From: Monocercomonoides exilis PA203
Lineage: Eukaryota > Protista > Preaxostyla
Direction: 5' to 3'
Assembly: GCA_001643675.2 (NCBI GenBank)
Contig: LSRY02000029.1
Location: 558,001-622,000, forward strand
Length of the DNA: 64,000 nucleotides
The translations under genes were made by a program, and so were the position numbers. Below the pieces are notes generated by a model. The model was not told where the DNA came from. It saw only the letters and a list, made by a program, of their open reading frames with translations, and made no database searches. Positions 2 to 38,908 of this stretch are shown in pieces; the first letter of the stretch is position 1; every line of letters begins with the position of its first letter.

Positions 2-3000
2 GCAAGAAAAGCATTTCTTTTCTCTTCATCGTCGCTTTCCATCGCCAACTGTTGTGTGGAATTCTCTTCAGAAAATACGAATGATCCTGTTTCCTTCGGC
101 GTGATCTTTGTTGAAAGCGGGAATCTTCTGATAAGTGGATTCAAAATGGAACAAGCAACAACATTCACAACTTCGCCCATCTTTGCAGACAACTACAATT
201 CAATAAAGATAGAGAACAGCAACATAACTGGAACGAGGAGGATAAATGGAGATGGTGGATGCTTATATATCAATGAAGCAAATGGAGATGAAAAAAGAAT
301 CACAATCCAAAGTTGCAACTTTACTGGCTCATGTGACGAAGGGAATGGAATTCGAGGCGGGGGTGTCATGGGGAAGGTTGGAAGCGGGAACGTTTTGAGT
401 GTGAAAAGCACAAGTTTTGAGAACTGCATGGTGCCTTCGGATGGCAATGGAAATGGAGGGAAAGGATTGGGGGGTGGGATGCATCTCTGCTTGAAGGAAA
501 GCATCGGAAGCATCGCCTTCGATAATATCAGTTTCAGTGGTTGTAATGCTTGGAAAGGAAAACAGCTGTTTGTTGACGGAGAAGATCTGAGGCAGATTGC
601 CAGCAATTGGCTGCAGTGTTTCAAAACAGAAACCTTCTTGTCTGAGGATATGATGGGATTTGAGAGAAGCACAACAAATCGGGAATTCCACGTACCGCTT
701 GTGCTATATTTCCGAACATTTGTGGAACCTTGCTTTATTGGTGGAGCAGAGGAAAAGAGCCTTGATTACACAGGATGCGGATTTTCGGATTATCCGTGTG
801 GAACGCTGCCGTATGGGGGCTTTGTGCGATTTGGGGATTCGAAGGCGCATCTGAGGCTCACAGATCGCTTCTGCTTTGCAAATGCGATTGTTTTGAGTTC
901 GCAAGAGATGGACATTGAAGCAGAGACAAACGGAACACTGATAAATGTGATGTCTGATGGAACAGGAGAAGGCGAAGGACTCATCGAGACAAGCAATGCA
1001 ATCTCATTCAGTGGAATAGCATTCAATGTTTCGACAACATTCGCAGCAGCCGAAAGAAAGTGTCTGCTTCTGTGCAGCGGCTCCGCCCTTTCGCTGGTTG
1101 ATTGCTCGGTGAACGCGCAATCGAAGAAGATCGACTTTGGATACGTGATTGTGAGAGGTGGCAATCTCCATATTCTGAGGGGAGTGCTGAACGAAATAGA
1201 ACTGCTGGGAGCGCCAGTGGTTGAACTGAGCGGCGGTAACAGCCGATGCACACTGGAAGATGTGGAATGGAACAACCTGAAGACAGGGTCAATCGAAGGG
1301 CTTGTTGGTGCGAAGTCGAAGAGCCATGTTGAAATGAAAAACTCGAAAGTGTCTGGGCCGACACAGTTTGGGAATCACGGGGTCTTTTTCGTTGAGGAAT
1401 CTTCGAGCGCAACTCTGGAAAAGAGCAACTTCACCCTGTTGACAAGAAACGAAGGAAACGGAGCGATAATTGATGGAAGAGTTGGAAGTGGAAAGAGTTT
1501 GAGTGTGAGTTTTTGCTGGTTCACTTTTATCAGCTGCATGGGGAGTGGCTCGAAAGGAGGAAGCGTCGTTGCAACTGTGTCAGCCGATGGGGAGCTGCTG
1601 TTCAACAACAACACGGTTGAAGAGAGCAAAGTGAGGAAAGCGGATGGTTTGGGGGGAGGGTTGCACATGGAGTTTTTGAGCAGCGAGGTTGGATATTCGA
1701 TGAAAAACAACAAATTCCTGAGCAATGATGCGATGCTGGGATACGATGTGTATCTTGTGTGCCCAACGCCGCGGATTACAATTGACAGAAATAAATGGGC
1801 AGGATCAGCCACAGAAGGCCAGGAGGAGGAAACGATGTGGGTGATCGATCCATCATTTCCTGAGGGATCTGACACGCTTCTGAAGTATTTGTTTCCGAGA
1901 GCAGACGAAATAATATATGTGAACACGCTCAATGGCCACACAGACGGGTGCGGTGCTGATGATTATCCTTGCGAGGAGCTTTGGTATGCTTCAGGGAAGA
2001 TGACCGAGGAGAAGCGGATTCTGCGAGTTCTTTCATCGTGCGAGCTAAGCGGATCAATAGAGAGAGAAAACGATCCGATTACAATTGAAGGGAAAGGGGA
2101 GGACGGGAGTCAGGTGATTGTGGGGAAAGAGGGGCATTTGAAGATGGTAGTTGGAACCACGTTTACGACGCTGACGATTTCGAAGATTGGATTTGAGCTG
2201 CCGCGAATATCAGATTTTGCTGAGCTGGTGGAAGTTGGGGTGGGCAAAACGTATTTTGTGGAGTGCACATTCGGAAGCGCAGATCCGGAAGCAAACGCGG
2301 AGACAAGCATGCGGATAATAACAGGGAGAGGAGGAAGGATCTCGTTGGATGGAGTGATCATAAAGAACATGGAATATAAAACTGACGGCGGAATCTTTTT
2401 GAGTGGCAAAGTTGTGTGCACTTTTGATAATGTCGAAGTGAGCGATATTCGATCAAGCGGAAAAGGAATGGTTGTTGGAGAAGGCGGAAATGAGATTTTT
2501 CTGAATGAATTGAGAAGCACAAACTGTTCATTTGGAAATGGCGGATTTGTTGTGCTGAAGAAAGTGAGGACTCTGAACTGGAAGAATGGCACGAGTATAA
2601 CAGACAGCAGGAACGAAGGAGGAAATGGTGGGTGTGGGCTTATTTCTGTTGAAGGAGAAAGCGATGTTCAGATCAACGGAACAAGCATCAGCTCCTGTTC
2701 TGCAAATAAGGAAGGCGGAAGAGGAGGCGGGTTGTATTTGGACATTTCAGAGAATCCCCTGTTGAGCATGAAGTTTACAGAAATAGTATTTGCAGATAAT
2801 TGTGCGTTTGAAGGAAAAGACATGTTTGTTTTGAGCACAGATGTGAATGCAACTGTTGTGAGAGATAGGTTTGCGTTTCAGCTTCAGAACGGGAAAAACG
2901 AAAACATTGTTGATCTGAAAGGCACAGATGATGTTTTGCTGAAAGGATCTGTTGTTGATCTTCTGCTATTCCTGATCCAAAGGAAGGAGAATACAATCTT

Positions 3001-6000
3001 TGTTTCAAGGGATGGAATGGACATTTTGGGGTGTGGAAGCGCGGAATTCGCTTGCCTGTCGTTCTGGAGAGGATATGAAAACATCGATTTGGATGCACAG
3101 AATAGAGTTATACGAATTGATACAGAAGCAAATATCAAAAACCATTACGATCTCTCATCGTTCAAAGTGATGTCCAACAAGGCAGATGAGAAGTGTGTGG
3201 TGTTGTTCGAGAATGCCATGGAAGCAAGGGAAGAGAAAAATTCAATTATTCAGAACTCGAAAGAATTGAAGTTGGAAATGATTCAGTTTTCGCTTCCTTT
3301 TTCTTTCACAAACAACGAAAATTTTCTTCTCCATTCTGAATCAGCCGATTCTTGCCTTTCGCTCAATGGATGCGCCTTCAACAGAAACAGCGCATCAGAC
3401 TTGGAGTTCTGCCTCATTCATTCTGAAGCAGGTGACGTTCAGTTGCTGAATTGTGATTTCTCTTCGCTGTCTTTCTCGTCAACGCCTGTCCAGGTGAATT
3501 CTTCGTGTGAAATAATCGGATGCAATTTTTCGTCGATATCGGCAAAGTCGAGTCAGAAGGGAGGTGCTGTTTGTGTGGAGCTGTTGAATGAAGCGACATT
3601 TTCGATGAATCAGACAGAAACGGTTGGCTGTGGTTGCTCTGAAGAACATGGGAGAGGAGGATTTATATTTCTTGAATCCAAAGGTGCCCCAACGGAAAAT
3701 CCTTTTGTTTTTGGGGAAAGTGTTTCTTTTGCTGGCCACAAGGCGCAAATAGGGAAAAACATGTTCATCTCGGCAGATGATCTGAACAAAAGTGTGACAC
3801 TCTCAACACTCTGCTTTGACTTCAGGAAAAGCAGAGAAGACGTGCTGCTGTTTTGTGGAAGAGATTTGGTCTGGAAAGACACCACCCTGCTCCGTTTCTT
3901 GGAGGCATACACAAGCCAAACAATATTTGTGAGCTCTGGTGGATACGATATTATGAGATGCGGAAGCGAAGAGGATCCGTGCATGAGCATGTGGAAAGGG
4001 ATGATGCAGATAGAGCGAGGTGCTCCGCAGACGTGGATAAAAATAGTGGATGAGACGATTGTGCAGAACTCGTTCGTGCTCTCCAACTTTATTATTGAAC
4101 AAGTTGAAACAGAAGAACAAAATCAAGGGAAGCTGATTTTTGCAAACAAGACAGAAAGTGGCACCGATCCCGCAATTAGCAGCGAGGGCGTTTTGCAACT
4201 GAATAGGATTTCAGTTGTACTATCGGAAGGGTTTTGGAACGAGCGGCAGTATTCATTTGTTGGAAAAAGTGGGGTGATTGGGATAAGCGATTGTTCGTTT
4301 GTAGCTGAGACACGTGGAGATGCTCCAGCGAAGGTTGGGCTCTTGTTGATGGAAAGCGGAGTGCTGAATGTTTCGAAGCTGTCAGTTGAGAATGTGATGT
4401 CGGAGATGGGTGTGTTTGCGATCAGCAACGGATGCGATTGTGCAATGCAGCATCTTGCGGCTTCGGGATGTTCATTTTCTGGAGTAAGTTTTGTGAAAAT
4501 AGTTTCTCGCTCATACCAAAAGGAGAATGCTGCTGACTGCTCTGTCGCCATCAAAAACTCCACATTCCAGCTGATCACTCGGAATGGAAACGGGCCTGCA
4601 ATTATCAGTTCGTCTGGCTGTGCTTCAGTGATATCAATCAGCGAATGCACATTTGATTCGTGCAAGGCAGTTGGTTCAGAGAAGGGTGGCGATGTTTTTG
4701 AGGAGCTTCATAGCGAAGGAGCTCTGTCGATGAGCAAGTCATCAGTGATTCAGTGTGGATGCAACAACGACAACGGAAAAGGAGGAGGGATTTACATATA
4801 TGCAAATTTTGAGGGTTCACTCTCGTTTCTGTTTGAGAAGATGACATTCAAAGGAAACAGCGCGAAAGTGGGGAATGACGTCTTTGTTGAGTGTGTTGAC
4901 ATCGAGAACCAGATCAACGAAACGCAGTTTTGTTTTGATTTGCGAGAAACGGCATACACGCGGTTGAATGCCATCTACGGGATGGACACAAGGAACCACA
5001 AAAGCGACACGAATCTGATGGACTTTGTCACGATCCACCAGGCAGACACCATCATTTTGTCATCCGCTCCCTCCAAGAACGGGAAGAATGACAGACAATG
5101 CGGAACACTGAAGCTTCCGTGCCTGACAATCGGCTATGCGCTGAGCCATTTGACGAACGATGTGGAAAGCAGACTTCTGGTGGATGACGAGTCGTTTGTT
5201 GAAAAGGAGATGGATCTGGAAGATCTTTCAATCGCGTCTCGAAAGGAAGATCCCTCGAAACTCACCATATTCCGCGATATTGCGCACACAAGATCCAGCG
5301 TAGTATCAACATCAGGAAGCGTCTCTGTCTCGAAGATTGAGCTTTTCTTTGATTCAGATTTTTCTTCAGCGCACCACATTTTGCTCACTGCAGAATCTGG
5401 AAGCCTATCATTGTTTTTGTGCAGTTTTGCTCAATCGCAGGAAGAAAGAAGTGCTCAAACGATTGGACTGACGCTCATCTCAATCGAAAATGGGCAAGTG
5501 ACTGCTTCACAGATAAAAATATCTCACATGCACTTTTCTGCCGAAGCTTCAGTTCGAATCGCTCATTTGAGTGGCTGCGTGTTGCTCTCTGAAATGAAAG
5601 TGGAAGATGTTGTTCTAGATAGAGGAGCATTCATTCTAATAAATGGAGCGCTATCATTTTCTGAGCAGCAGAAAAGTGGAAGAGAAAGATCAGTTGAACT
5701 GAAAGCAGTGTCTTTTAACAATGTTTCTTCTGCTCAGGAAGGGGGAGGGGTTATTGGATGCTCATCGTTCAACGAAGGGATTTATTTTGGTAATTGCACT
5801 TTTTCAAACACATCTTCAAAATCTGAAAGAGGATGTGTGATGACTTTTTGCGGGTGCAACAATGTGTCAATATATTGGAATGTGCTTCGAGGTGAGTTGG
5901 GCTATTTGGAAAGATGTGGAAATAAGGAAGAAGCAGACATATGCCAATGGACATCTTCAGCTGTTTCGTTTGTTAACAGCTCAGCGAATATGAAAGACAC

Positions 6001-7996
6001 CACGATTGAGAATTTTTCAAAAGGAGGGATTGGCGTCTTTGGGGGATATGTTACGATTGAAGAGGGGAAATTTATGGAGAATGATCCGAGGATTGAGGGA
6101 TACCCATCAATAAGAAGGAACATTGTGTGCGGAGGCAAAGGGAATCTGAATATTTGGAGTCTGAAAGGCGGAGACGGGCAGGAAAGAAACGAATCGCTTT
6201 GGATGCTGAATGAAGGATGCACACTGAGCGGGATAGTGGAAGAAAGGAAAACTTCTTTGTTTGTCCCCACTTTGGAAAGTGTGGCTGTGGAAGAGGAAGG
6301 AGCAGAGTTGAAGGTGACATTTAAAGGGCAACTTCTTTTGCCTTGCAATTTATCGTTTCGGGTGGTGACAGCCATCCGATCAGAAGCGTTGGTGGTGCGA
6401 TATGAGTTTGAATCCGAAGGGTTTGTCTCGGAAGATGAGGCTTGGGGGAAAATACCTTCGAAATCAATTCGAGAGGCAGAAGAGGAAGCAGAAGTGAGTG
6501 CTTCGATTCTTTTTGGAGAAAAAGAGGGACCATCGTCCACCGAAGCAATCATTCTGAAGAACAAAAGTGAACCCCAGTCAAAGGGAGATAATATTGTTGC
6601 TGAAGGCGGAAAAGAAGAGAAATCATCATGGGCTGTTATTTGCGTGATATTTGTTGTGCTATTCGTGATTGTTTTGGTTGGATTTATTGTGTTTGTTGTT
6701 CGATGGAGGAAATGGAAAGAGGAAGCACAGAAATACAAAGAGATTGTTGAAGACACAGTGAAGAAGGATCCGAAAGCGTTTGAGATGGTGACGATGGAGA
6801 TGTCGCCTGAGGAGCAGTGGAGGAGAGCAGAAAGGGAGGCAGAGAAGAAGAACGATGAGAGGATGAAGAAGAGGGTGTATGAGAATAGCTTGGGACACTC
6901 AGAGTCATCTGAGCACCTTCTGTCTGAAAGTGGATCGACTGAATACATTCTGGGGAGAGATTCAGACAAGATCCCAGATTGGGCATTGGAAAAGGAGGAG
7001 GAGGAGACAAGAAAGCAGACTCCATCGCCATCGATTTCATCCACCTCAACCACTTCAACAACTGATTCAGATTCAACATTTGTTCGAGGGGAGGATATGT
7101 GCCCAACCACTTCATCGATGTCGAATCTGGTGGATGCAATGGCATGTTCATCTCCACATGAGAAACTGATTGTGGATCTGCGAGATTCATTATTCATGCT
7201 TCTTCATGGAAAGAACGAGAAGAAGGAGATGGCTATTGGGAGCTTGAAGGAAAGGGAGATGACGACTGCCCAGATCCTGTTCTGGGTGGCCAATCTTGCA
7301 CTTCACTCCTTTGATGAAATGGACAATCCACTTCAGTCATTGGCCAATCTGAGTCCTCACATTGTGTTATTCTCAGAACACATGGTTATCTGCATAGTGA
7401 TGCATTCTGATTTATTATCAGATGATGATTCAGACTCTTCTTCCATCTCTTCATCAACTATTGTGACTTCTGCAAGTGATGATGATGATGAAGAGGAATC
7501 TCTGCCATCCTCAGCGTTTGAGGATGAGGATGCCTTCAAAAAAGAGTGTCTGCGATGGAAGGCGCCAGAGCTGCTGATGAACAAGAACATGGGAGCAACG
7601 AAGCAGTCAGTGGCATTCTCAATTGGGATGATGCTGTGGGAGTGCTTGACACTTCAGATCCCATTTGGAGAGTTTGAGGCAGCAATTGCAGGAGATAAGA
7701 TTACAAAAGGAGAAAGGCCGAACTGCCAAATGCTCAGAGGACAGAAGTGGTGTGAGATGGTTCGAAAGTGTTTGTCGGCAGAAGCTTCAGAAAGGATGAA
7801 CCTGATGGAGATGAAGAGGGAATTTATCCAATTATTTCCAAGTGGATCTGCAATGCTAACAATGTCTGATGCAATTGACATTATAGAAGCATGTGCTGGA
7901 AATAAGGAGGAATCACAAGCATGCTCATACACAATTGATAGCGACGGGGCAATTCGGCTGATTCAAAAGTGTGGAACAAAAGAAATCACTCAATGA
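2..7996 (+). CDS. Giant single-pass membrane protein, copy A: repeated CG-x4-[PA]C / GG / FxxN beta-helix-like ectodomain, TM helix, TKL-like pseudokinase tail (5' end outside window)
   Basis: Frame is open from base 2 (ARKAFLFSSS...) to TGA at 7994-7996 with no introns needed. Five Cys modules: YTGCGFSDYPC, TDGCGADDYPC, ILGCGSAEFAC, IMRCGSEEDPC, DRQCGTLKLPC. TM segment WAVICVIFVVLFVIVLVGFIVFVV is followed by RWRKWK. Kinase subdomain VIII-IX motifs LRWKAPELL and FSIGMMLWECLTLQIPF. Confidence 0.85.
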   Translation, partial: ARKAFLFSSSSLSIANCCVEFSSENTNDPVSFGVIFVESGNLLISGFKMEQATTFTTSPIFADNYNSIKIENSNITGTRRINGDGGCLYINEANGDEKRITIQSCNFTGSCDEGNGIRGGGVMGKVGSGNVLSVKSTSFENCMVPSDGNGNGGKGLGGGMHLCLKESIGSIAFDNISFSGCNAWKGKQLFVDGEDLRQIASNWLQCFKTETFLSEDMMGFERSTTNREFHVPLVLYFRTFVEPCFIGGAEEKSLDYTGCGFSDYPCGTLPYGGFVRFGDSKAHLRLTDRFCFANAIVLSSQEMDIEAETNGTLINVMSDGTGEGEGLIETSNAISFSGIAFNVSTTFAAAERKCLLLCSGSALSLVDCSVNAQSKKIDFGYVIVRGGNLHILRGVLNEIELLGAPVVELSGGNSRCTLEDVEWNNLKTGSIEGLVGAKSKSHVEMKNSKVSGPTQFGNHGVFFVEESSSATLEKSNFTLLTRNEGNGAIIDGRVGSGKSLSVSFCWFTFISCMGSGSKGGSVVATVSADGELLFNNNTVEESKVRKADGLGGGLHMEFLSSEVGYSMKNNKFLSNDAMLGYDVYLVCPTPRITIDRNKWAGSATEGQEEETMWVIDPSFPEGSDTLLKYLFPRADEIIYVNTLNGHTDGCGADDYPCEELWYASGKMTEEKRILRVLSSCELSGSIERENDPITIEGKGEDGSQVIVGKEGHLKMVVGTTFTTLTISKIGFELPRISDFAELVEVGVGKTYFVECTFGSADPEANAETSMRIITGRGGRISLDGVIIKNMEYKTDGGIFLSGKVVCTFDNVEVSDIRSSGKGMVVGEGGNEIFLNELRSTNCSFGNGGFVVLKKVRTLNWKNGTSITDSRNEGGNGGCGLISVEGESDVQINGTSISSCSANKEGGRGGGLYLDISENPLLSMKFTEIVFADNCAFEGKDMFVLSTDVNATVVRDRFAFQLQNGKNENIVDLKGTDDVLLKGSVVDLLLFLIQRKENTIFVSRDGMDILGCGSAEFACLSFWRGYENIDLDAQNRVIRIDTEANIKNHYDLSSFKVMSNKADEKCVVLFENAMEAREEKNSIIQNSKELKLEMIQFSLPFSFTNNENFLLHSESADSCLSLNGCAFNRNSASDLEFCLIHSEAGDVQLLNCDFSSLSFSSTPVQVNSSCEIIGCNFSSISAKSSQKGGAVCVELLNEATFSMNQTETVGCGCSEEHGRGGFIFLESKGAPTENPFVFGESVSFAGHKAQIGKNMFISADDLNKSVTLSTLCFDFRKSREDVLLFCGRDLVWKDTTLLRFLEAYTSQTIFVSSGGYDIMRCGSEEDPCMSMWKGMMQIERGAPQTWIKIVDETIVQNSFVLSNFIIEQVETEEQNQGKLIFANKTESGTDPAISSEGVLQLNRISVVLSEGFWNERQYSFVGKSGVIGISDCSFVAETRGDAPAKVGLLLMESGVLNVSKLSVENVMSEMGVFAISNGCDCAMQHLAASGCSFSGVSFVKIVSRSYQKENAADCSVAIKNSTFQLITRNGNGPAIISSSGCASVISISECTFDSCKAVGSEKGGDVFEELHSEGALSMSKSSVIQCGCNNDNGKGGGIYIYANFEGSLSFLFEKMTFKGNSAKVGNDVFVECVDIENQINETQFCFDLRETAYTRLNAIYGMDTRNHKSDTNLMDFVTIHQADTIILSSAPSKNGKNDRQCGTLKLPCLTIGYALSHLTNDVESRLLVDDESFVEKEMDLEDLSIASRKEDPSKLTIFRDIAHTRSSVVSTSGSVSVSKIELFFDSDFSSAHHILLTAESGSLSLFLCSFAQSQEERSAQTIGLTLISIENGQVTASQIKISHMHFSAEASVRIAHLSGCVLLSEMKVEDVVLDRGAFILINGALSFSEQQKSGRERSVELKAVSFNNVSSAQEGGGVIGCSSFNEGIYFGNCTFSNTSSKSERGCVMTFCGCNNVSIYWNVLRGELGYLERCGNKEEADICQWTSSAVSFVNSSANMKDTTIENFSKGGIGVFGGYVTIEEGKFMENDPRIEGYPSIRRNIVCGGKGNLNIWSLKGGDGQERNESLWMLNEGCTLSGIVEERKTSLFVPTLESVAVEEEGAELKVTFKGQLLLPCNLSFRVVTAIRSEALVVRYEFESEGFVSEDEAWGKIPSKSIREAEEEAEVSASILFGEKEGPSSTEAIILKNKSEPQSKGDNIVAEGGKEEKSSWAVICVIFVVLFVIVLVGFIVFVVRWRKWKEEAQKYKEIVEDTVKKDPKAFEMVTMEMSPEEQWRRAEREAEKKNDERMKKRVYENSLGHSESSEHLLSESGSTEYILGRDSDKIPDWALEKEEEETRKQTPSPSISSTSTTSTTDSDSTFVRGEDMCPTTSSMSNLVDAMACSSPHEKLIVDLRDSLFMLLHGKNEKKEMAIGSLKEREMTTAQILFWVANLALHSFDEMDNPLQSLANLSPHIVLFSEHMVICIVMHSDLLSDDDSDSSSISSSTIVTSASDDDDEEESLPSSAFEDEDAFKKECLRWKAPELLMNKNMGATKQSVAFSIGMMLWECLTLQIPFGEFEAAIAGDKITKGERPNCQMLRGQKWCEMVRKCLSAEASERMNLMEMKREFIQLFPSGSAMLTMSDAIDIIEACAGNKEESQACSYTIDSDGAIRLIQKCGTKEITQ

Positions 7997-12530: not shown

Positions 12531-12921
12531 GTTCCAATTTTAATTGTTTTCTATTTTTTAAATTAAAAAAGCATGAAATATAATACGATATATGGGGCAT
12601 TTCACAATAATTTTTTATTATTTCTATAAATAAAGAAGAATTGTATATTACAAAAATACAAGAATCAACAATTATTTCATTTTCTGAAATTTTCAAATTA
12701 ATAACTTATTTTTTTAGATGAATGAAAAGAATTAAATAAAAATAATAACGAAAAGAAACGATGAAAATGTATCTTGAACCAAAAAGATATTCACTATTCG
12801 ACTTTGAATTTCAAAATTTCAAGAAAAACTTGAAATAATGAATGAAATTTTGCGCACATGGCTAAGAAATGTTGGAAATCCCTTTGAACAAATTTTCAAC
12901 AACAGAAAATTTTCAACAAAT

Positions 12922-17228: not shown

Positions 17229-17249
17229 ACAAATGCAATATCCGAAAAG

Positions 17250-24552: not shown

Positions 24553-25608
24553 AGCGAATGTTCAATGCATTCCCATTCCTTTCATCTCATCTTAGAATGG
24601 AAGAAAACAGATAATAAAAAAAAAAAAAAAAAAGAAGAAGAAGAAGAAGATTACAGCAATTGAGCATGCGAAAAGGCAAATGATAAAATAAAAGAAGACA
24701 AACAAGCAAAGAAGAGAAGAGATTTTATTCTGAATCAACATTTTCAGCTGAACACGAAGAATATTCAACTAAAATTGTTTGTTCATTCGTTTCATTCAAT
24801 CTTTCGTTTTCATCTTCCAATTCAACTTCACTCACGCACTCTCCCTCATTCATTCACACATCCACGCAACGTCTATCTTCATTAAAACGATTGTGATCTT
24901 TTTCTTCTTCCTCCTTTTCTTCTTGTTCTGCTGCTGCTGATGCTTTTGCTTCTGATTCTGCTTCTTCATCGGAAATTCAATCATATTTCTCACTCACTTA
25001 TTTGAATCTTCAGCATTTCATCCATCTATTAATGATGCTGTTGATTTCTTATTCGTTGTTCATCTCTCTTGAAGCTATTCTCAATTAACAAAGATCATCA
25101 TATTTCTCCATAATCATCAATTAAGGCATCTTTTTGGATTCCTACAAATTCTTCATCTACATCAGAGAACATAAAAGAAAAGAAGAAAAGAAATGGATGC
25201 AATGTTGAGAAGAAAGTATAGAAAGAGAAGAAAGAGAAGAAAGATTTTGTTTTGAAAAATTCAAACGAAGAATGAATTGATTCAAAAGAAAGATGAAGAA
25301 CGCAACAAACGGTTGGAGAGAAATTCTGATTTATACATGTATTTTTGTATTTATATATCAATATATATTTTCTTGCTTATGTATTTATTTCTTCTCATAT
25401 TTATTTTATTTATTTTTATTTATTAATTTTTCCATCTTCGCTGTTGATTTTTTTCATTTCTCCCAAATCATATCTTGTTAGTGTAAGACTAACAAATTTG
25501 AGATGAAAATAATCGATATTTTGAAAGTTTTTCTTCAGATTAAAGAAAAAAATCAAATGTTACATTTTCTCAAAATAGAAGTTGCATTATTATTTCCATT
25601 ATGAAACA

Positions 25609-26007
25609 TACACGAAAAAATTATTCAAAACGAGAATTTTTATGTTTAAAAAAATAAAAATTGCATTCAAAATAATTATTTTGCAGACGAATAAATAATT
25701 TTTAATAACCTAACAAAAATTTTTCCACTCTCTCACGAAATATTGAGAAAATTATTTAATCAATTCTGAATCTGCAATAATTCTGTGTGGTCATTGTTAT
25801 CTTGTGTGCATGTGTAAACAGTTTTTTTAAATTTAATATTTTTCCCTGAAAATTTTTGTATTTTCAAAAAAAAATCCAATGAAAATCAGGGATAATTTCA
25901 TTTTGAACACAATAATTAGTATTAAGAATGAAAAAATTAACAATAAGTTTACAAAAATGTAAATTCGATTGCAAAAATTCTCGTTTTGAATAATTTTTGG
26001 AGTGTTA
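25609..26007. mobile_element. MITE, family 1, copy b (inverted relative to copy a)
   Basis: TA|CACGAAAAAATTATTCAAAACGAGAATTTT at the left end and AAAAATTCTCGTTTTGAATAATTTTTGGAGTG at the right end. The body matches 16930-17226 in reverse complement. Confidence 0.8.
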
Positions 26008-29600: not shown

Positions 29601-32600
29601 GTTTTGTCCATCCCATAAATCGCGTTCTGCCTCACGTAGATACCTTCTCTCAAATCGAACTTGAATTGGGTTTCATTGATTTGTTCTGATATGTTGTGGC
29701 ACGAAACATAAATGTCGTTACCAACTTTTGCCGTATTTCCTGTGAATGTAGCACTCTGGAACAAGAAATGCAGTGATCCACTTCCTGTTGCATCAATATA
29801 AAATGCACCGCCTTTCCCTTCATTCGAGCAGCAGCAACGGATCATCGTTGAATTCAAAACAGAAAATGAGCCCTCTTCTGGCAATTTTATAAAAGCAACT
29901 CCTCCTTTTTGACTTTCGACAGCTTTGCAGTCGCTCAAAGTTGTTCCACTCACATCAATAGAAATGTCTCTATCTCTTTGACAGTCAATCACTGATGCTC
30001 CGTTGTCTGCTCTTGTTACAGAAGTTATTACCGATTCATTCATCAAAAATTTGGATTTTTCATCAGAGTTCATTCCCTTTCCCATTTCTATTGATTCAAC
30101 AAATTCAAAAATGCTTCCATCAGAAATATTCACAAATGTACATGTGAAATTGTTAGCAATGCAAGTTACAGACCCAATTGCAATTGAGCTTTTCCCAATG
30201 CTCGCTGACTCCATTGACACTTCTGCAAGCAAAAGCTTTCCTTTTATGCAAGTTACAAAATTACACAATATTTCCCGCTTTCCAGAAGAAATACCTTCTG
30301 TTTCAAACGAACATTTTTCAAAAGACAACGCTCCATTCTCACACAAAATCAATTCTGATGCAGAATTGTTGAAGGATGATTCAATTACAAGTGTGATAAG
30401 CTTCAACGAAAGCTCGCCTTCGCATCGCAAAAATGGATCAGACATTTCTCCAGACTTTTCTCGAAAAGAAAGAATCGACTTGTAATCTTCGTCTTCATCC
30501 AATGAACTTGATCGAATTGTGAATGAGGAGAGATTGAATGTGTTTGCTACAGGAGTGGTTCTGTTGATTATGATCACTTTGACTATCTCTTCCTCGTCAA
30601 TTTGCTGCATTCCTTTCCAAAATGTTCGACACGGATCATCTGTGCTTCCACATCTCATCACATCCTCTCCGTCTTCCGATAGAAAAATCGAGGCTGCATG
30701 ATAAGAAACCAAATATCTGAATAAGTCCAGTTCTTCGCTTTCTCCTTCAATCCCCACAAACGCATTGCTGTCTTCTTTCATCGACTCGAATGAAAATGCA
30801 AATGCTGTCAAAGTGACTGAAGAGTTCAATTCAGTAGATGCAATAAATATGTTTTTGCCTAGCTGCGCATCATTTCTCTCAAACGTCATTTCACCTTCAA
30901 ATCGTAGTGGTGCTGTTGCTGTCGATTTCGAGCAATCTGCATACAAAAATCCCCCTTTCCCGTTTTTTATGGAGCATTTGCAAAGTTCTGTTTCACAATT
31001 CTTCACTCGTAGCAAATCTGATCGCTCCAAGTTGGCAGAAACTGCTCCACCCCCAATGCTCGAAGGCGTATTTATGTTTCGGAAGCAGCAATTTTCAAGC
31101 GTCACATAAGATGAAAGTGCTATCGGGCAACTTGAAAATGTCACAGAAGAAATTGAAACATTTAGCAGTTGCACTGTTCCTCCTTTGCTCAGAAGCAGAA
31201 TATATTCAAGCACAGTAGTATTAGAGCAAAGAAAGGTTGAATTAAGTGTAAGATATCCATCTGTTGAAGAAAACAAGGCAGATTGTCCACTTGTGAAGAG
31301 CGATGGTAGATGAAACTCCACCAAGGAAAACGTCAGGGAGTTTCTCGAACTGAAAATTGATGGGTTTGATCCGCTTGCTGTTTGAGAAACTATCAGCTTG
31401 GCAAATGAACGCAAAGCAGCTGATGAAGAAAATCCAATTTGAAGTTCAGCTAATTCAAACGCAAAGCACTCACTTATCAAAACCTCGTCCATCACTTCAA
31501 CGGAGCATGTCTGAGATTCTGAAGATGCCTCTAAATTGTTAACACCTCGCCACAACGAGTGGCAAGGTGTTTCTGCCTTTCCACACCCAATAAAGTCGAT
31601 TCCAGCCGATCCAACGCTTATCGTCGACGAAGAAAACTTCACCAAAAAATACAGCAGATCCGCAGATGCACTCATAAAATGTGTTTCATCTCTTCCTTTC
31701 AGATCGACTTTTGGTCGTTCGTCTTCTCCAAAATACTCGAAATCAAACAGAGATGGAATGATTGATGCGTTCAAATCAGCGCATCTCACAAACATGTCTT
31801 TCCCTTCAAATGCTTCATTTCTGCTAAATGTTATTCCAGAAAACAAATAATTATTTGTGCTTCCCTTCAAATCGAAATAGATGCCACCTCCTCTCCCATT
31901 AATCTGATTCACTTCACAAGTCACAATTGATGTTTTGTTCACAATCAAAGATCCTTCTGCTTCAAGAATGCAATTAAGAATTCCTCCATCTCCTTTTATC
32001 GAAGAGCATCCATCAAATGTGCATGCTCCGCTAACATGTACTGATTTCGGGCAAATAATTTCCATTGCATGTCCGTTTCTTGTTTCACAGTTAACGAATT
32101 CGGTGTTCTTAAGTGTAATATCACAATTGTCTCTTCCAACAATTAATCCGTTTGGAGCATCAGATGAAACAGAAGAAAAACTGCAAGACTCCAAAGAGAG
32201 CGATGCACCTTCAATCGAAGCTATTCCGCCTGACTGAAATGGAATCCCTCCAAGAGTGCAAGAGGCAAAGTGTACAACTCCGCCTTCTCCTGAAGCAATC
32301 CATTTCGAAGGGTTGGAATTACTGCTGCTTCCTTGTTCAAATGTGCAATCCAGAAACGAGCATTGACCAATGCTAACTTCCACAAGTGAACTCATTTCTG
32401 GTGAAGGATTGGGAGACGATGGAAGCACAAAGCAAAGCTTGGAAAATGTGAGGGTGGTTGAGCGAGTTCCTTCGACAAGCTCAAATTTTCCATTTCTTCC
32501 AAATATCATCGCTTTTGTTGTTGTATTACTTTGAACGGTGAGGGAGATTCCATGTCTGTTCACAATAGCATCGATGGGAGTATTTCCTTCGAGCTGGATG

Positions 32601-35600
32601 ATGGAGTGTGAAGAATCCATTTTCTGAAAACCCAGCTCCACTGAGGCGCATGGGTTTCGCTTCGGCCCACAGTTCTCAACAGCCGAGACAGCTCCATCCA
32701 CGAACACAAATGAGGTCTGAGGAGGGAACAGGAAGTCGATCATTGTGCTTCCTCCATCGATCGACTCAAAAGGACTGCGCACCCAAAAGCGTTCTGGTGC
32801 TGCCTCTTCAGAAACAGATCCGTTCCAATACATTAGCACAATCAAGGCACCCGGCTCTTCACAAACAACATATGCATCCTTCCCACGGAATGCTCCATTA
32901 TTCTCAAATGTGTTGTTTCTCATAGAATAATCGATGTGTGAAGAGGCAAACGTGAGGAACAGCCCTCCGCCAAATCCATCCCCACTAGACACAATGCAGA
33001 ACTCCACTTTGTTTCTCTCGAATCGGAAGACGCCTCCTTCTTCAACATCCATGAGCACACATCCTCCTATCGTTCTGGCTGAGTAACAGCTGCAGCGCGA
33101 AAATAAACAGTTTTCCACCTCCAGCTCTTCGTTCGATCCAATTCCGCCACTGATCACTGCGCCATCCCCATTTGTTCGCGTTAGGTTTCCAAATGTTATG
33201 TTTTTTAGAAAGCCATTCGACAAAGAATTAATTGAGATATGGTTACTGTTTGGAAGAGTCACATTTTCGATGCTGCTGTTCTCAATATTCAATTTTTTCC
33301 CTCTCGCAACCAAAATCAGTGCCCCATCCCCTTCTTTGCTCAAAATGGATGTTTCTATTCCCTCAATCGCACACTCGGCATTGCTCCCATCAAGTGCAAT
33401 AATCTCTGCATTTCCCATTGCAAGTTCATTTATTGAGCACCCATTCAATTCCACTTTCCCATTTGTCACATATATGATCCTGTACTCAACAGCTGAGCTG
33501 CTGCTGTTTTGAAACTCGCATCTGTCAATGGTGAGCGTGGCTGACGAACACAGAAACAGAGAAGTCCGCGAGGGTTCTTCAAAAGAGCATGGTAACCCAA
33601 ACACTATTTCACTGAACTTCACATTGACTGAAGAGAACAATAATCCAGCACCTTCTCCCACTCCGTCGCTTCTGACATCAAAAACAGCTCCAATTTGCTC
33701 AGCAATCACTTCGGTTGGCTGCGTATTAAATAATATGGCACTCTTGAAGGAAAAGTCTGCTGTCAACCTGATGGATGCACCAGATGAATCGGGTGCTGGA
33801 AAGCGCTTGGAGATTGCAAAGGGGATCGTTGCACAGGGATATATCGAAACACCGCACATGCGATAGTCAAACCCAAAGCTCCCTCCGACAATTGCTGGCG
33901 GCTCAAACGTCAGAAGAAACACAACCAGAGGAATGGCATACGAAATATTCCCATCTTCAAAACTACACAGCTTCCCAAATTCAGCTGTTGACTCTTTGTT
34001 GATATCAAACTTGAATGACTGATTGGTGATGATTTTGTCCAGGTTGTATCCTTCAACAAACACGTTGCTTCCTCCTCCCTCTGCTTCATTGCTTGTACCA
34101 TCTCCCTCGGTTCCGAAAGACATCGCTGCGAGGACAAGATCAGCCAGGCAATCTGCATGCTTCAGAAATATTCCTCCCCCAAATCCACATTCTGGCAAAG
34201 TGCCTTTTGCACTGCACCTGGCAAAGCTTGTGGTTGTGCCTTCCTTGCCAATCCGAACTTTGGCAGAGGAGCTTGTGCTGATGAACACCCCTCCTCCGCA
34301 TCCACTCACAGAAGAGCAGCAATCGACTGAAATATCGTTTAGCTCCAGTGACTCGCTTTCTCCAATTTCTGCCTTGATCACGCTTCCGTTCCCTTCGTTT
34401 TTGATTATCCCTGATAAAGTGTTGTTTTCAACAACCAGACTTTTGCCATGCTTGTCTTCCACAAATGAGCAGCATGAAGAAGCTGACTGGTTGATTGTTG
34501 TGTTGCGTATGTTCAGAGTGCCAGCTGAAGAATATGAGATGATTCCAGTATCAACAGCAGATGTGACATTTGTCCACGTGCAAGAGTCTATTGATCCACT
34601 TCCTTCGTTGTGAACTTTTATCACCTCAACAGATTGGAATCCAATTGAGTTTATTGTGAATCGGGTCATCGCAAATGAGCCTTCAGCAACAACCAAAAAT
34701 CCAAAAGAGCATTTTTCTTCACCTTGTTCAGTTAGTGCTGAGCAGTCCTCCAGATGAAGCATCACATTTGCACTACACTCAAGAAACACTGATGATTGAA
34801 GGCTGGGGATAGATGGCTGCAGATAAAAGTCGAGATACCTAAATGTTGATGTTTGGGAAACTGTTATCATTGCATTTGCCGTTGAGGATTGGGTTCCAAT
34901 CATTTTCATCTTTGTTTCCAATGCTTTGCCTTCGATTAAGATTTCGTTGGCAGACGAGAGAGAAACAACTTCTTCGAATTCATAATTAGGGAGAATGATC
35001 AGCTGAACAGAATCTTCACTTTGAAACATAGAAAATTCGATAGTTTTGCAAGCGTATTCTGCAAATCCACATACAGAAACGTCGTTCCCTTCTTTTGAGA
35101 CATAAACGCCTGCTTTGCGTGGTAGAAGATAAAACACAAGTGGTATTATCACATTTGGCCACTGTGAATCAATTCCAGCGCAACTTTCAAGGGAAAATGG
35201 TGCTTCTTGATTAAAGAATTGGAATGTGGTTGAAATAACACACCACTCCAGATGCAGCGAACATGCAAAGACATCGTCTCCGTGTTCGGCTGTATTAGAG
35301 ATAAATGAAAGCGATTTTGAGAGAACAAACTTAGCATTGGCTTCGTCGAAAATTATTTGTATGGCTCCACCTTTTCCACTTGATCCTAAATTTGGTTTTG
35401 GAGCCTGACACGAAGTGAAAGTGGACAACTCGAGTATTAGCGCTGTCTGACTATTGAGGTGAGTAGCAATCGCCCCACCTCCTTTTCCGTTTTCAGTCAC
35501 TTTGCATCTTGTGAATGTGCAATTGCTTGCTGTGAACGAGCTCGCATAGCTATTTCTTCCATTCAAATTCACGCACGAGCCGTTTCCCGTGGTTCTTTTG

Positions 35601-38600
35601 ATATCTTCGAAAGTGGAATTTTTGATTGTTAACAAATATGTTCCTGAGGAACTGACGATAAATGCAGAACTTGTCAAATTTGAGTTACGAAATGTGCTGT
35701 TGTTGATTGTTGTGATGTTCCCTGAGTCGACAGATATCAGCCCATTGCTACAAGATGTTGTCATTCCGTTCATATCCAAAGAATTAAAATCTGCAGAGGC
35801 ACTTCCACTGATAGCAACAAATGGTTCATTGTCAAAGTTTAACTTCTGTGCAAGAGGAACTGCAAAGTTGCTGATAGATAATTTTCCGTTAGTGATCTTC
35901 ACAAGGCAATACGAAATAGAAGCTCCCAAAACAGCTGGTATAGCCTCACAGTTGGACATCGACAATACATTGGCATTCGATAGAATAAAGGCACTCCTCC
36001 CATTCAAAGATGCCTCAAGCACAAATTTGATTCTGCTGAAACTTGTCTCCACAGAATTGATCAAAAGCCCTTCATTCTCTTTCACTTGTGATGAGCCAAT
36101 GTTGATGGGTGTGTTGTCTTCTTCAACATCAAATGCATACGATTGACTGTTGAGGAGCGTTTCTTTTCGGAAGGAGAAGGAAGGCAGAAAGCGAATGATT
36201 CTCTTCGCATTGGTAAATCGCGCAGCTGAAGCGCCTTCCACACTCTGGCACGGATAATCGCGATATCCGCAAAGGCGATAGTCTGAATCAGTGGTCTGCC
36301 CCGACACATAAGCAGGAGATGAGAAGTTCCTCAGAAACACAACAAGCGGGATGACTATGTTTTGATCTACGTTCTCCGTCCCGCTCAGTTCATCCAGATC
36401 GGTCGAATCAACAGCAACAGAAGGGTTGAATGCCAGCGTTGCTGTGTTGATAACCTTTGACAAATTTTTGCTTTCAATAAATACTTTTTTCCCTTTCCAT
36501 CCATTGCAATTGGAAAACTGAAGCATTTTGAGCTGGAAATCATCGGCTCCCTCCATAACATGAATATAGATTCCTCCTCCTTTTCTCTTTTTCTGGCTGT
36601 CTGTGGGAACAGTGCATGTGTCGAACAGGCAGTCAGAATCTACTCCAATTTGCGCATTGCTAAGTGCATTCAGCTCCAAATACAGCGCTCCTCCATTTCC
36701 ATCCAAGCACTTGCAGTTCTTCATCGAAACATTTGAAAGAACAAAGCTTTCTTCTGCTTGAACTGCCTTACTGAACACTGAGCCATTGCCTATCTTGCGG
36801 CTAATCATTGATATCTTCACATTGCTCAGAGCAAGATGTGCTTGCTTTTCTGTGGTAAATAGCGATGTGCTCTCAAAAACCACTGATGATATCTCGCAAC
36901 TCTCGAGTCTTGCCTCTCCTTTTGTAAGCAAAAAAAATGGTGCACTAAATGCAGAAGAAGTTGATTCTGCCTTTAACGAGCACTCGTTCAGCACAAGCAC
37001 AGAATACTCGTTGTTCTCAGAAAATATGCATTTATCTGGGGAAGATGTCGAGCTGTGAATAATCTGCATTCCGCGCATGTCCAACGATCCACCAAGAAGA
37101 GTGCAAAATGCGCCACTTGATGGATTCGTGAAGATTTTAACACTTGAAGAAGAAGTGTTCTTTTCAATGGTCATATGTTGGAACCCAACAGAAAATGAGG
37201 ATTCAGAATACTCTCCTGAATATAGCTTGACTGTCTTGTGATATGAGTTTATCCACTGACAGCATGAAAAGCAAACTGTGTGGCATTCGTTTGAAACATC
37301 TCCACATCCATCAATATCTCCTGATGTTCGCTCAGGATTCACATAAATAACATTTCCAGATGGATTTGGAAGGAAAGCATTTCGCTCTTCTCCGCTTGAA
37401 CAACTTCGAAATCCACTGGTGCACATCCATACTCTGTTTTGGTTGCTTTGTGAAAAGCAAAGCTGAAAGCACGATGAGTTTGTGAGATTAAAATAATGAT
37501 CTGTGAATGCAATATCTGTTCCTTTGGGTGCAGTATTGTTAATAAAAAAACTATACCTAAAAGAAACTGGGTTAACAGACCCGCTGATATCTCTCATAAC
37601 AAAAATAGCTCCTCCAACATTAACAGCTGAATTTGAATCACAAAGCCAATCAATTGCAATAAATGATGAAAAAGTTTGATATAATGCGATTGCTCCGGCT
37701 TCACCAATTCTGCTTTTGCTTTTTATCATTTTCAAACTTGTACAACACACAGGAGATGACGATCCAGCAATTAAACCCACTCCACGATAAGCACCTTCAC
37801 ATTCTGTTGAATTCATATCGGTAACAGTTACAGAACTAAATAAGTTTTCAATTCGCATGACTCCTTCTTGAGCAATTGCATTGCATTTTTCCGCAGTACA
37901 ATTCTGAATCAAAAGAGGTCCAACGTCAGTCATGTGAATAACACCTCCATAGCCATTGGGATGAGTATTGTTGCATCTGTCAAAGAAGCAATTTTTAATC
38001 GTGAATGATTTCGTGTTGGAAGCACAAATTGTTCCTCCTTTTGGTTGAGACGTTTCAACGTTGAATGTCGTTTGTTCAATAACAACATCCCCGTCGGAGC
38101 TACTGAAAACTTGTCTGTTTTGTTCGGTTACTGTACAAGCTAAAAACGAAGAATTGAGACAGAAAAACGATGATGTGTAACCTCCAATTGTGAGTACAGA
38201 GCAAAAGGGATTTTCAACTCCCAAAAAATTGCACCCAAAAACAATGCTCTCTTTCGATTTCAAATAAAGCTGATGCTCTTTATCAGTAGTTTGGAGATGG
38301 CTGATATTTTTGAAAAAGCAATCAGAAGTTTGAACGCAATCGAAATCTCCCGAGGCAAGAAGAGGATTGCTCATTTGAACAACAATTGAAGAAAATGATG
38401 ATGATTGTACAATCAGTGAACTCTCATTCCACAAATTCACCATGCTGTTTGACGCAATGTTTTTGTGTGAAAAAAACGAAAGCGACAGATTAACAAATTC
38501 AAGAGCGCTGCACGAAGAATATATTGGCTCTTTTGAATATTCCCTCAAATGAATAATACATCTGTATATTCTGCACTTTGAACCATGCTGCACATTAAAA

Positions 38601-38908
38601 AGTGCATTTCCCCCTTTTCCATGCAAGCATAATTGTGAAACGGATAGTGAAGAATTAATAACTTGGTTAATAGATGAAATAACTCCTATGCCAACGAGCA
38701 GCGTAGAATTCCAAGCAGTTGAAGATGTAGAAAATATTTTAAAGAAAAATTTTTCCGTGTTGCAGGAGTCTTCTATTGACTCTCTGCTTTGAGAAATTGA
38801 AAATGGAGAATATTTAATAATTTCGTCTTTCAGCAATTTATCGTGAATGTTGCACCATTCTTTCCTTGCCTCAAAAAATGTTAATAATAGTATCAAATAG
38901 ATTTTCAT
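26678..38908 (-). CDS. Giant (4076 aa) intronless single-pass receptor-like protein, copy B: signal peptide, 8 Cys modules with beta-helix-like repeats, TM helix, TKL-like pseudokinase
   Basis: Single 12.2-kb ORF with hydrophobic N-terminus MKIYLILLLTFF and recurring GGAI/GGG and FxxN motifs. Modules: DGCGDVSNEC, RLCGYRDYPC, SVCGFAEYAC, RMCGVSIYPC, ENCGPKRNPC, IGCGKAETPC, MRCGSTDDPC, RQCGTYALPC. Same TM and WKAPE tail as copy A. Confidence 0.9.
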   Translation of the reverse strand: MKIYLILLLTFFEARKEWCNIHDKLLKDEIIKYSPFSISQSRESIEDSCNTEKFFFKIFSTSSTAWNSTLLVGIGVISSINQVINSSLSVSQLCLHGKGGNALFNVQHGSKCRIYRCIIHLREYSKEPIYSSCSALEFVNLSLSFFSHKNIASNSMVNLWNESSLIVQSSSFSSIVVQMSNPLLASGDFDCVQTSDCFFKNISHLQTTDKEHQLYLKSKESIVFGCNFLGVENPFCSVLTIGGYTSSFFCLNSSFLACTVTEQNRQVFSSSDGDVVIEQTTFNVETSQPKGGTICASNTKSFTIKNCFFDRCNNTHPNGYGGVIHMTDVGPLLIQNCTAEKCNAIAQEGVMRIENLFSSVTVTDMNSTECEGAYRGVGLIAGSSSPVCCTSLKMIKSKSRIGEAGAIALYQTFSSFIAIDWLCDSNSAVNVGGAIFVMRDISGSVNPVSFRYSFFINNTAPKGTDIAFTDHYFNLTNSSCFQLCFSQSNQNRVWMCTSGFRSCSSGEERNAFLPNPSGNVIYVNPERTSGDIDGCGDVSNECHTVCFSCCQWINSYHKTVKLYSGEYSESSFSVGFQHMTIEKNTSSSSVKIFTNPSSGAFCTLLGGSLDMRGMQIIHSSTSSPDKCIFSENNEYSVLVLNECSLKAESTSSAFSAPFFLLTKGEARLESCEISSVVFESTSLFTTEKQAHLALSNVKISMISRKIGNGSVFSKAVQAEESFVLSNVSMKNCKCLDGNGGALYLELNALSNAQIGVDSDCLFDTCTVPTDSQKKRKGGGIYIHVMEGADDFQLKMLQFSNCNGWKGKKVFIESKNLSKVINTATLAFNPSVAVDSTDLDELSGTENVDQNIVIPLVVFLRNFSSPAYVSGQTTDSDYRLCGYRDYPCQSVEGASAARFTNAKRIIRFLPSFSFRKETLLNSQSYAFDVEEDNTPINIGSSQVKENEGLLINSVETSFSRIKFVLEASLNGRSAFILSNANVLSMSNCEAIPAVLGASISYCLVKITNGKLSISNFAVPLAQKLNFDNEPFVAISGSASADFNSLDMNGMTTSCSNGLISVDSGNITTINNSTFRNSNLTSSAFIVSSSGTYLLTIKNSTFEDIKRTTGNGSCVNLNGRNSYASSFTASNCTFTRCKVTENGKGGGAIATHLNSQTALILELSTFTSCQAPKPNLGSSGKGGAIQIIFDEANAKFVLSKSLSFISNTAEHGDDVFACSLHLEWCVISTTFQFFNQEAPFSLESCAGIDSQWPNVIIPLVFYLLPRKAGVYVSKEGNDVSVCGFAEYACKTIEFSMFQSEDSVQLIILPNYEFEEVVSLSSANEILIEGKALETKMKMIGTQSSTANAMITVSQTSTFRYLDFYLQPSIPSLQSSVFLECSANVMLHLEDCSALTEQGEEKCSFGFLVVAEGSFAMTRFTINSIGFQSVEVIKVHNEGSGSIDSCTWTNVTSAVDTGIISYSSAGTLNIRNTTINQSASSCCSFVEDKHGKSLVVENNTLSGIIKNEGNGSVIKAEIGESESLELNDISVDCCSSVSGCGGGVFISTSSSAKVRIGKEGTTTSFARCSAKGTLPECGFGGGIFLKHADCLADLVLAAMSFGTEGDGTSNEAEGGGSNVFVEGYNLDKIITNQSFKFDINKESTAEFGKLCSFEDGNISYAIPLVVFLLTFEPPAIVGGSFGFDYRMCGVSIYPCATIPFAISKRFPAPDSSGASIRLTADFSFKSAILFNTQPTEVIAEQIGAVFDVRSDGVGEGAGLLFSSVNVKFSEIVFGLPCSFEEPSRTSLFLCSSATLTIDRCEFQNSSSSAVEYRIIYVTNGKVELNGCSINELAMGNAEIIALDGSNAECAIEGIETSILSKEGDGALILVARGKKLNIENSSIENVTLPNSNHISINSLSNGFLKNITFGNLTRTNGDGAVISGGIGSNEELEVENCLFSRCSCYSARTIGGCVLMDVEEGGVFRFERNKVEFCIVSSGDGFGGGLFLTFASSHIDYSMRNNTFENNGAFRGKDAYVVCEEPGALIVLMYWNGSVSEEAAPERFWVRSPFESIDGGSTMIDFLFPPQTSFVFVDGAVSAVENCGPKRNPCASVELGFQKMDSSHSIIQLEGNTPIDAIVNRHGISLTVQSNTTTKAMIFGRNGKFELVEGTRSTTLTFSKLCFVLPSSPNPSPEMSSLVEVSIGQCSFLDCTFEQGSSSNSNPSKWIASGEGGVVHFASCTLGGIPFQSGGIASIEGASLSLESCSFSSVSSDAPNGLIVGRDNCDITLKNTEFVNCETRNGHAMEIICPKSVHVSGACTFDGCSSIKGDGGILNCILEAEGSLIVNKTSIVTCEVNQINGRGGGIYFDLKGSTNNYLFSGITFSRNEAFEGKDMFVRCADLNASIIPSLFDFEYFGEDERPKVDLKGRDETHFMSASADLLYFLVKFSSSTISVGSAGIDFIGCGKAETPCHSLWRGVNNLEASSESQTCSVEVMDEVLISECFAFELAELQIGFSSSAALRSFAKLIVSQTASGSNPSIFSSRNSLTFSLVEFHLPSLFTSGQSALFSSTDGYLTLNSTFLCSNTTVLEYILLLSKGGTVQLLNVSISSVTFSSCPIALSSYVTLENCCFRNINTPSSIGGGAVSANLERSDLLRVKNCETELCKCSIKNGKGGFLYADCSKSTATAPLRFEGEMTFERNDAQLGKNIFIASTELNSSVTLTAFAFSFESMKEDSNAFVGIEGESEELDLFRYLVSYHAASIFLSEDGEDVMRCGSTDDPCRTFWKGMQQIDEEEIVKVIIINRTTPVANTFNLSSFTIRSSSLDEDEDYKSILSFREKSGEMSDPFLRCEGELSLKLITLVIESSFNNSASELILCENGALSFEKCSFETEGISSGKREILCNFVTCIKGKLLLAEVSMESASIGKSSIAIGSVTCIANNFTCTFVNISDGSIFEFVESIEMGKGMNSDEKSKFLMNESVITSVTRADNGASVIDCQRDRDISIDVSGTTLSDCKAVESQKGGVAFIKLPEEGSFSVLNSTMIRCCCSNEGKGGAFYIDATGSGSLHFLFQSATFTGNTAKVGNDIYVSCHNISEQINETQFKFDLREGIYVRQNAIYGMDKTDHREDTNLLDFITIYQADTIIVSSLHENRGRNDRQCGTYALPCLSLDYAIAHVTADFESHVVVDGASVIESEIGLDNVLLSSRSRYVGNVTIHSIATGLTDAVVTTLNAVSIMNLCFSFEADFLCPHSTFISPQSGIVELTNCSFSSAASLPLRSLFDFSKGNGSINSCIFNSLILRSSVIEASASCSVMISFCQFGTINSGGTLINCEKCRDLLMMHTSFANNSLSLSSANVPSLLAGISIGNLTLSNCSFIGKKHTLEKGILAVVSQCPEVLLDLCTFNGCNDFEMKNERSSKTEELCNWNGSLIDMQKSRVVMKDTTIANSSDGGASVEGGSVVIEKGEFVGNNPWIVGYTSARRNIVCREMGEVNVMSVKGGDGQEKNGSLWMLNEGCTLSGIVEERKASLFVPTLESVAVEEEGAELKVTFKGQLLLPCNLSFRVVAAIRSEALVVRYEFESEGFVSEDEAWGKIPSKSIREAEEEAEVSASILFGEKEAPSSTEAIILKNKSEPQSKGDNIVAEGGKEEKSSWAVICVIFVVLFVIVLVGFIVFVVRWRKWKEEAQKYKEIVEDTVKKDPKAFEMVTMEMSPEEQWRRAEREAEKKNDERMKKRVYENSLGHSESSEHLLSESGSTEYILGRDSDKIPDWALEKEEEETRKQTPSPSISSTSTTSTTDSDSTFVRGEDMCPTTSSMSNLVDAMACSSPHEKLIVDLRDSLFMLLHGKNEKKEMAIGSLKEREMTTAQILFWVANLALHSFDEMDNPLSSLTNLSPHIVLFSEHMVICIVMHSDLLSDDDSDSTSISSSTVVTSASDDDEEDSLPSSAFEDEDYYKKECLRWKAPELLMNKNMGATKQSVAFSIGMMLWECLTLQIPFGDYEAVTAGDKITKGERPNASAIRKSVFFEAVKVCLSGEASARPTLVELKRLFIQHFPKGAAMLTISDAIDFEDESEEKENSKVSLLLVSGSEEVDKREN

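Follow-up and report, generated by a model that had tools for sequence, protein, structure and literature searches.

Two giant genes in one stretch of the Monocercomonoides exilis genome encode proteins that differ along most of their length and are nearly identical at and just inside the membrane. The locus therefore raises the question of what kind of proteins these are, how large a family they represent, and why their inner parts agree so closely when their outer parts do not. The stretch analyzed here, referred to as the window, comprises 64,000 nucleotides (positions 558,001–622,000 of contig C24), and the genome searched comprises 82,301,135 bases on 101 contigs.

Gene A lies on the forward strand. 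Its stop-free frame at 2–7996 (annotated model P0002) is the 3′ two-thirds of a full frame of 4,005 amino acids, whose first ATG precedes the window by ~4,020 nt. Beta-helix modules of the ectodomain occupy 2–6100, the transmembrane helix lies at 6623–6700, and a pseudokinase remnant extending from the hinge to the C-lobe is found at 7160–7880. A conversion tract at 6185–7308, discussed below, covers the end of the stalk, the transmembrane helix, the juxtamembrane region, and the start of the kinase remnant. Gene B (MONOS_9996), on the reverse strand, is a single open frame of 4,076 amino acids at 26678–38908. Its upstream beta-helix modules and a putative signal peptide, recognized by eye, occupy 29500–38908, a region that shares 93% DNA identity with MONOS_7290, a sister gene on C24. 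The membrane-proximal beta-helix module and a conserved stalk with a terminal all-beta domain follow at 28025–29581, and ancestry switches within this zone. The transmembrane helix (27944–28021) and the cytoplasmic tail (26759–27943) complete the protein; the tail contains predicted juxtamembrane helices, a Ser/Thr-rich linker, a C-lobe remnant with an acidic/Ser insertion, and two conserved tyrosines. Both genes encode one strong hydrophobic helix, ~440 residues from the end. The initial annotation described two intact giant type-I membrane proteins, and the stop-free frames at 2–7996 and 26678–38908, each with one transmembrane helix, bear this out, the signal peptide being putative. Public gene models omit parts of both open frames (residues 2234–2289 of B as an in-frame intron, and residues 1–417 of A through a late start), so that annotated lengths understate the proteins.

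A third, broken copy was also proposed, and it is real, but it does not lie in the region of A and B (2–38908). It occupies 59400–64000 of the forward strand and runs past the window end, covering ~59.4–66.8 kb in all. It belongs to the largest ectodomain class; its reading frame shifts near 60,430 and is broken by in-frame stops at 61524, 64533, and 66717, the last two beyond the window. A non-standard genetic code was ruled out as the source of these stops, which read TGA, TGA, and TAG inside gapless alignments. A search within the window for a further receptor copy between A and B found none.

The window contains several other genes and repeats. A DEAH-box RNA helicase at 8579–11273 (reverse strand), in two frames and probably with an intron, is convergent with gene A. 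Between A and B, a MITE-like element of ~840 nt (18893–19728) has 110–165-nt terminal inverted repeats of 21–23-nt subrepeats; the genome holds 40 or more copies of it (244 candidates). The segments 16900–18468 and 23348–25938 contain an inverted pair consisting of a 257-codon ORF (23782–24552), to which no known family was assigned, and a decayed copy, together with 323-nt arms at 91% identity. Hairpin-type inverted repeats are found at 45750–46159 (141-nt arms at 77%) and 46996–47996 (421-nt arms at 94%, 159-nt spacer). A spliced reverse-strand gene at 42259–45289 combines a ZGRF1-like N-terminal domain with an SNF2 domain and is Rad54B-like; the siting of such a recombination factor between receptor copies is probably a coincidence. 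The forward strand also encodes a possibly secreted, Cys-containing protein in two frames (48284–50790) and a 1,004-aa protein with a C-terminal TLDc domain (51467–54481), and the reverse strand a 360-aa ORF with a P-loop-like start (55481–56569); the first and last of these have no Pfam match.

Aligned end to end, A and B share mostly 20–40% identity over 3,300 amino acids, 98–100% over ~400 amino acids that make up the stalk, transmembrane helix, and juxtamembrane region, and then 75% and 46%. The ectodomains are thus collinear yet diverged, as first described. The companion claim of an almost invariant stalk, transmembrane helix, and juxtamembrane region holds for the A/B pair, but not for the family: identity among 111 paralogues is 50% in the stalk and 77% in the cytoplasmic part.

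Each ectodomain contains eight beta-helix modules, with a Cys-pair cap every 310–400 amino acids (8 per gene versus 0.14 expected by chance). The cap is a better module marker than the GGA(I/L/V) and FxxN repeats from which the fold was originally suggested. GGA(I/L/V) is enriched, with 3 occurrences in A and 5 in B versus 0.3 in shuffled sequences, and 316 versus 22 across the family (14-fold, ~3 per protein). FxxN, in contrast, occurs 13 times in A versus 13 in shuffled sequences and 21 times in B versus 15 (shuffled maximum 26), and is enriched only 1.3-fold across the family. The proposed beta-helix fold itself is supported by AlphaFold modeling of the membrane-proximal module and stalk (pLDDT 84.7). 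Modeled residues 10–399 match right-handed beta-helices with VIA Z scores of 25.5–25.6 and an rmsd of 3.1–3.3 over 310 residues, and a roughly 100-residue all-beta domain follows the beta-helix in the model. The fold was modeled for this one module and is assigned to the remaining modules by repeat similarity; Pfam Beta_helix is found in 15 of 50 members.

Structural neighbors of the module include a PL6 alginate lyase, the epimerase AlgE4, and the pneumococcal adhesin PfbA, and the shared fold alone does not establish function. All 19 invariant columns fall in the stalk, and the module keeps almost no polar residues across classes, a conservation pattern that suits modules differing in binding specificity better than a single conserved enzyme. 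Feature and shape searches returned only the family's own cluster or weak matches. Painting of six proteins indicates that ectodomains are inherited largely as blocks. Module-by-module shuffling within ectodomains was rejected, its fixed-offset signal being mostly an artefact of annotated introns.

The cytoplasmic tail retains only part of a kinase. The match is confined to the C-lobe, from the APE motif to helix I (Pfam PF07714, PK_Tyr_Ser-Thr, positions 164–257, above cut-off), and PDB sequence matches are ILK (the best, E 9e-6), CSK, and ZAK. Among 120 tails, the glycine loop GxGxxG is present in two and the VAIK lysine in none. Aligned to the canonical motif, the HRD loop position reads L[AST]NLSPHIVLF in these tails, so that the aspartate is replaced by Asn or Ser and the asparagine by Ile. 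The DFG site reads VICIVMH in 94 tails, D[FLW]G occurs anywhere in only three, and the helix-F aspartate is absent. The APE motif is retained in 119 tails. A structural model of the cytoplasmic part is poor (pLDDT 45) and shows C-lobe helices only, so the absence of the N-lobe rests on sequence. The dN/dS ratio (Nei-Gojobori, 30 loci) is 0.10 for the juxtamembrane region, 0.07 for the core, and ~0.3 for the stalk and transmembrane helix, and the tail is under strong purifying selection. A conserved tail that is not an enzyme may most simply be read as a docking scaffold.

A 24-nt tail motif is found 904 times genome-wide with one mismatch allowed and 960 times with three, versus 0–1 in the reversed control. 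The copies lie on both strands and on every contig listed, about one per 86 kb. This collection is far more than a handful and agrees with the large repertoire that had been proposed. Of the best 100 tails, 70 sit in open frames 2,500 codons or longer, and frame lengths peak near 2,500–2,800 and 3,900–4,200 codons. Twelve of the same tails lie in frames below 1,000 codons; with many broken copies, the third copy of the window included, the family fits the suggested birth-and-death mode of evolution. At 60% identity, 111 long annotated members fall into 33 ectodomain classes, with mostly 20–40% identity between classes; this protein sample is biased toward long, well-conserved, annotated members, and its gene models contain doubtful introns. 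The A class comprises 11 copies on six contigs at 83–89% DNA identity, and the B class ~13 copies, some partial.

Inverted neighbor pairs with equal scores are common among the members listed for C6, C7, C9, C14, C22, C36, C58, and C73. One of them (C9:714482–722799) looks palindromic, its arms measuring 4 kb or more on either side of a ~230-nt spacer, and another (C36:844017+/852796−) has equal tail scores and frames of 2,661 and 4,059 codons, resembling A and B. A 7,937-aa relative, P0219 (MONOS_336), shares the family stalk, bears 12 or more caps, and ends in a tail of 51 amino acids.

Published analyses list 332 protein tyrosine kinase genes in M. exilis, 320 of them TKL (PMC6759080), and report that protein tyrosine kinases overlap unclassified repeats (PMC8767320). 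The receptor family is almost certainly this same family, because genome and Pfam match are the same and some members bear the name. These two papers do not mention the ectodomain, the transmembrane helix, the lost catalysis, the ~950 copies, or the tail exchange, and a search of the literature outside subscription journals found the family nowhere described as receptors or pseudokinases. M. exilis is a gut protist without mitochondria and serves as a model for amitochondriate eukaryotes; its largest gene family would thereby be recast, comprising not 332 enzymes but ~950 genes for giant receptor-like proteins that carry a dead half-kinase. If copies average 2,600 codons, the family would make up roughly 9% of the genome, an upper estimate given the many truncated copies, and would put a name to a share of the unclassified repeats.

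The DNA of A and B is ~99% identical at 6250–7308, with perfect runs of 380 and 345 nt, and synonymous differences in the tract are 0–5%, versus 53–66% between contigs. Both genes are patchworks along their length. The ectodomain of A is 75–94% identical to two genes on other contigs, its stalk and transmembrane helix are 97–99% identical to B, and its C-terminal end is 87% identical to its own class, so that the matches of A to its own class flank the B-like patch. Compared with MONOS_7290, B is 92–100% identical in ectodomain and stalk, 58–92% in transmembrane helix and core, and 93% at the end. Such a patchwork is the signature of gene conversion: a related copy has overwritten one of the two genes, hence their apparent identity inside. 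The near-identity over stalk, transmembrane helix, and tail is thus a 1.1-kb conversion tract atop real purifying selection. The stalk part of the tract in A came from the B/MONOS_7290 lineage, an assignment that covers the stalk part only.

Conversion of this kind extends across the family. Of 88 proteins, 51 share a contig with their nearest tail, versus 3.9% expected, and DNA searches with C9 and C24 tails rank their own contig first. Tail identity is 0.805 for pairs on the same contig but of different class, versus 0.776 for pairs of the same class on different contigs, the pairs not being independent. Incongruence between tail and ectodomain histories had been anticipated, and separately built trees show it: of 46 supported splits among the tails, 40 disagree with the ectodomain tree. 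Tail identity follows contig more than ectodomain class, and the family offers a clean case of concerted evolution restricted to the inner part of a receptor. Nearest neighbors by ectodomain also share a contig in 33–45 of 88 cases, so local whole-gene duplication contributes as well.

The tail described above is not the only one. A stalk search returned M. exilis proteins with different tails, among them MONOS_1060, whose ectodomain is 82–97% identical to the A-class protein MONOS_1089 and which carries a second dead-kinase tail. This second tail resembles the main tail in the C-lobe only (29% over 102 amino acids). MONOS_1060 is one frame of 3,870 codons on C16 and is therefore not a fused gene model. 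On C60, a frame of 4,001 codons joins a B-class ectodomain to the type-2 tail, so both ectodomain classes of the window occur elsewhere with another inner end. The type-2 tail is present in ~85 copies and a kinase-free acidic, Lys-rich tail in ~19. The initial annotation envisaged a common non-catalytic signaling module; the loss of catalytic motifs holds in 120 tails, but the same ectodomain classes occur with three or more types of tail, so the module is not common to all members.

Relatives are also found beyond M. exilis, their range being read from 20 named among 150 matches listed. Blattamonas nauphoetae BLNAU_14775 has a cap, stalk, transmembrane helix, and C-lobe without HRD, and further relatives lie on metagenome contigs, indicating that the dead-kinase architecture predates M. 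exilis. A metagenome scan with the tail gave no match, and one with the stalk matched one contig (L034:198–1205), whose stalk and transmembrane helix are 35–43% identical and whose tail is unrelated.

Four RNA-labelled runs hold 79–82% of gene A words, which suggests that gene A is transcribed. Their contigs also span the gap to the neighboring helicase gene, which either overlapping UTRs or DNA could explain. DNase-treated culture transcriptomes exist (PMC12308965).

Taken together, these proteins probably form a repertoire of type-I surface receptors with glycan-binding rods, scaffold tails, and a recombining stalk and tail, for which we infer the surface location, the ligand, and the scaffold role. 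Outside the cell, each would present a rod of ~4 to 8 right-handed beta-helix modules, a predicted fold, whose probable targets are polysaccharides or other structures on the surface of gut bacteria. The protist eats such bacteria, and its bacterivory is documented (PMC12308965). The ectodomain class would set specificity. Inside, a tyrosine-kinase-like C-lobe without catalysis may serve as a docking scaffold upon receptor clustering, and the Ser/Thr-rich stretches and two conserved tyrosines are possible substrates of other kinases. The family evolves by duplication and loss, to which recombination adds exchanges in the conserved parts, stalk and tail. Most conversion takes place within a chromosome and homogenizes the tails, and the same exchanges join one ectodomain class to different tail types, the A/B near-identity being the footprint of one such exchange. 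A bolder version is conceivable but doubtful, in which ~1,000 genes form a combinatorial system whose dozens of beta-helix classes are rewired at the stalk to at least three outputs, like paired activating and inhibitory receptors, so that a single-celled predator could distinguish gut bacteria, with expression perhaps differing between cells.

Some of the same observations could describe an antigenic-variation coat, in which one or a few members are expressed per cell and switched and the constant tail is an anchor or shedding signal. A variable outside, a constant inside, many pseudogenes, and conversion tracts would be expected of such a coat, and RNA-labelled runs fall below DNA runs in tail-to-single-copy depth ratio and in paralogue variants, a weak, contig-based signal that fits partial expression. 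However, the copies are dispersed on both strands at about one per 86 kb, conversion homogenizes the inner part rather than diversifying the outer, and proteins of 280–440 kDa whose conserved tail measures 420 amino acids do not resemble known coats, making this reading unlikely. It is quite unlikely that the modules are membrane-anchored lyases or hydrolases that degrade bacterial capsule polysaccharides. The top structural neighbors are lyases, epimerases, and tailspike depolymerases, and active sites could still differ between classes, but only one His and one Glu among the charged and aromatic residues of the module are at least 70% conserved between classes, the stalk is where invariant residues cluster, and the adhesin PfbA scores equally well.

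A largely functionless or selfish repeat, expanding like a mobile element and conserved through conversion alone, would account for ~960 dispersed intronless copies that overlap unclassified repeats (PMC8767320) and for the many broken ones. This is very unlikely given dN/dS values of 0.07–0.3 in all tail and stalk segments, frames of 8–12 kb that remain open, the absence of transposase or reverse transcriptase domains (Pfam), and the same dead-kinase architecture in Blattamonas. Thirty loci also lack a family-wide 3′ flank, shared flanks occurring only in same-contig sisters. Shared transposon ends were rejected on these 3′ flanks and on the 5′ ends of A and B. The A/B tract might instead be an assembly or polishing artefact, since the nanopore assembly was polished with short reads and a few tract letters differ in public contigs. 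Contigs from an independent study nevertheless bridge A-specific sequence into the tract (X1, 5493–6223, without differences; X3, 5493–6559), and chromosome-linked tail similarity is seen genome-wide, so an artefact is highly improbable. Least credible of all is the reading that the published name suggests, namely receptor kinases that are atypical yet active: the Pfam PK_Tyr_Ser-Thr match above cut-off, APE in 119 of 120 tails, and the published annotation speak for catalysis, yet the glycine loop, VAIK lysine, catalytic Asp and Asn, DFG, and helix-F Asp are missing. Read as a receptor repertoire, the family offers a testable route to the choice of bacterial prey by M. exilis and its resistance to axenic culture.

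Comparison with known systems helps place the family. Transmembrane kinases of Entamoeba histolytica have Cys-rich ectodomains; those of the M. exilis family are beta-helices with fewer than one CxxC per 1,000 amino acids. E. histolytica is likewise a gut protist whose receptor-kinase-like family has expanded; some of its members are truncated, and their expression is selective (PMC2880585). EhTMKB1-9 is, however, an active kinase, and B1 has 35 members (PMC2880585), whereas the M. exilis tails are catalytically dead by sequence. Chlamydial and trichomonad Pmps also combine a beta-helix with GGA(I/L/V), and trichomonad forms have one transmembrane helix and promote adhesion (PMC6701047, PMC11166332). 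The M. exilis proteins differ in their sparse GGA(I/L/V), barely enriched FxxN, and long pseudokinase tail; none has an autotransporter Pfam match, and ATPITK or NPx[YFW] occurs in 0 of 111 proteins. The early likening to Pmps therefore does not amount to identity: these proteins are not Pmps.

Among paired immune receptors, Siglec-11/16 have near-identical ectodomains on different tails and undergo gene conversion (PMC5701461). Conversion there homogenizes the ectodomain of a pair, whereas in M. exilis it homogenizes tails across ~950 genes, so the resemblance is one of analogy, without homology. Integrin-linked kinase, the best PDB sequence match of the tail, and other scaffold pseudokinases likewise have a dead TKL-type domain. 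In ILK and other scaffold pseudokinases, this catalytically dead domain serves docking. ILK keeps both lobes and binds ATP, whereas only the hinge to C-lobe is recognizable in the M. exilis tail. By analogy, the family would work like a receptor-kinase or paired-receptor repertoire, standing outside both active kinases and Pmps.
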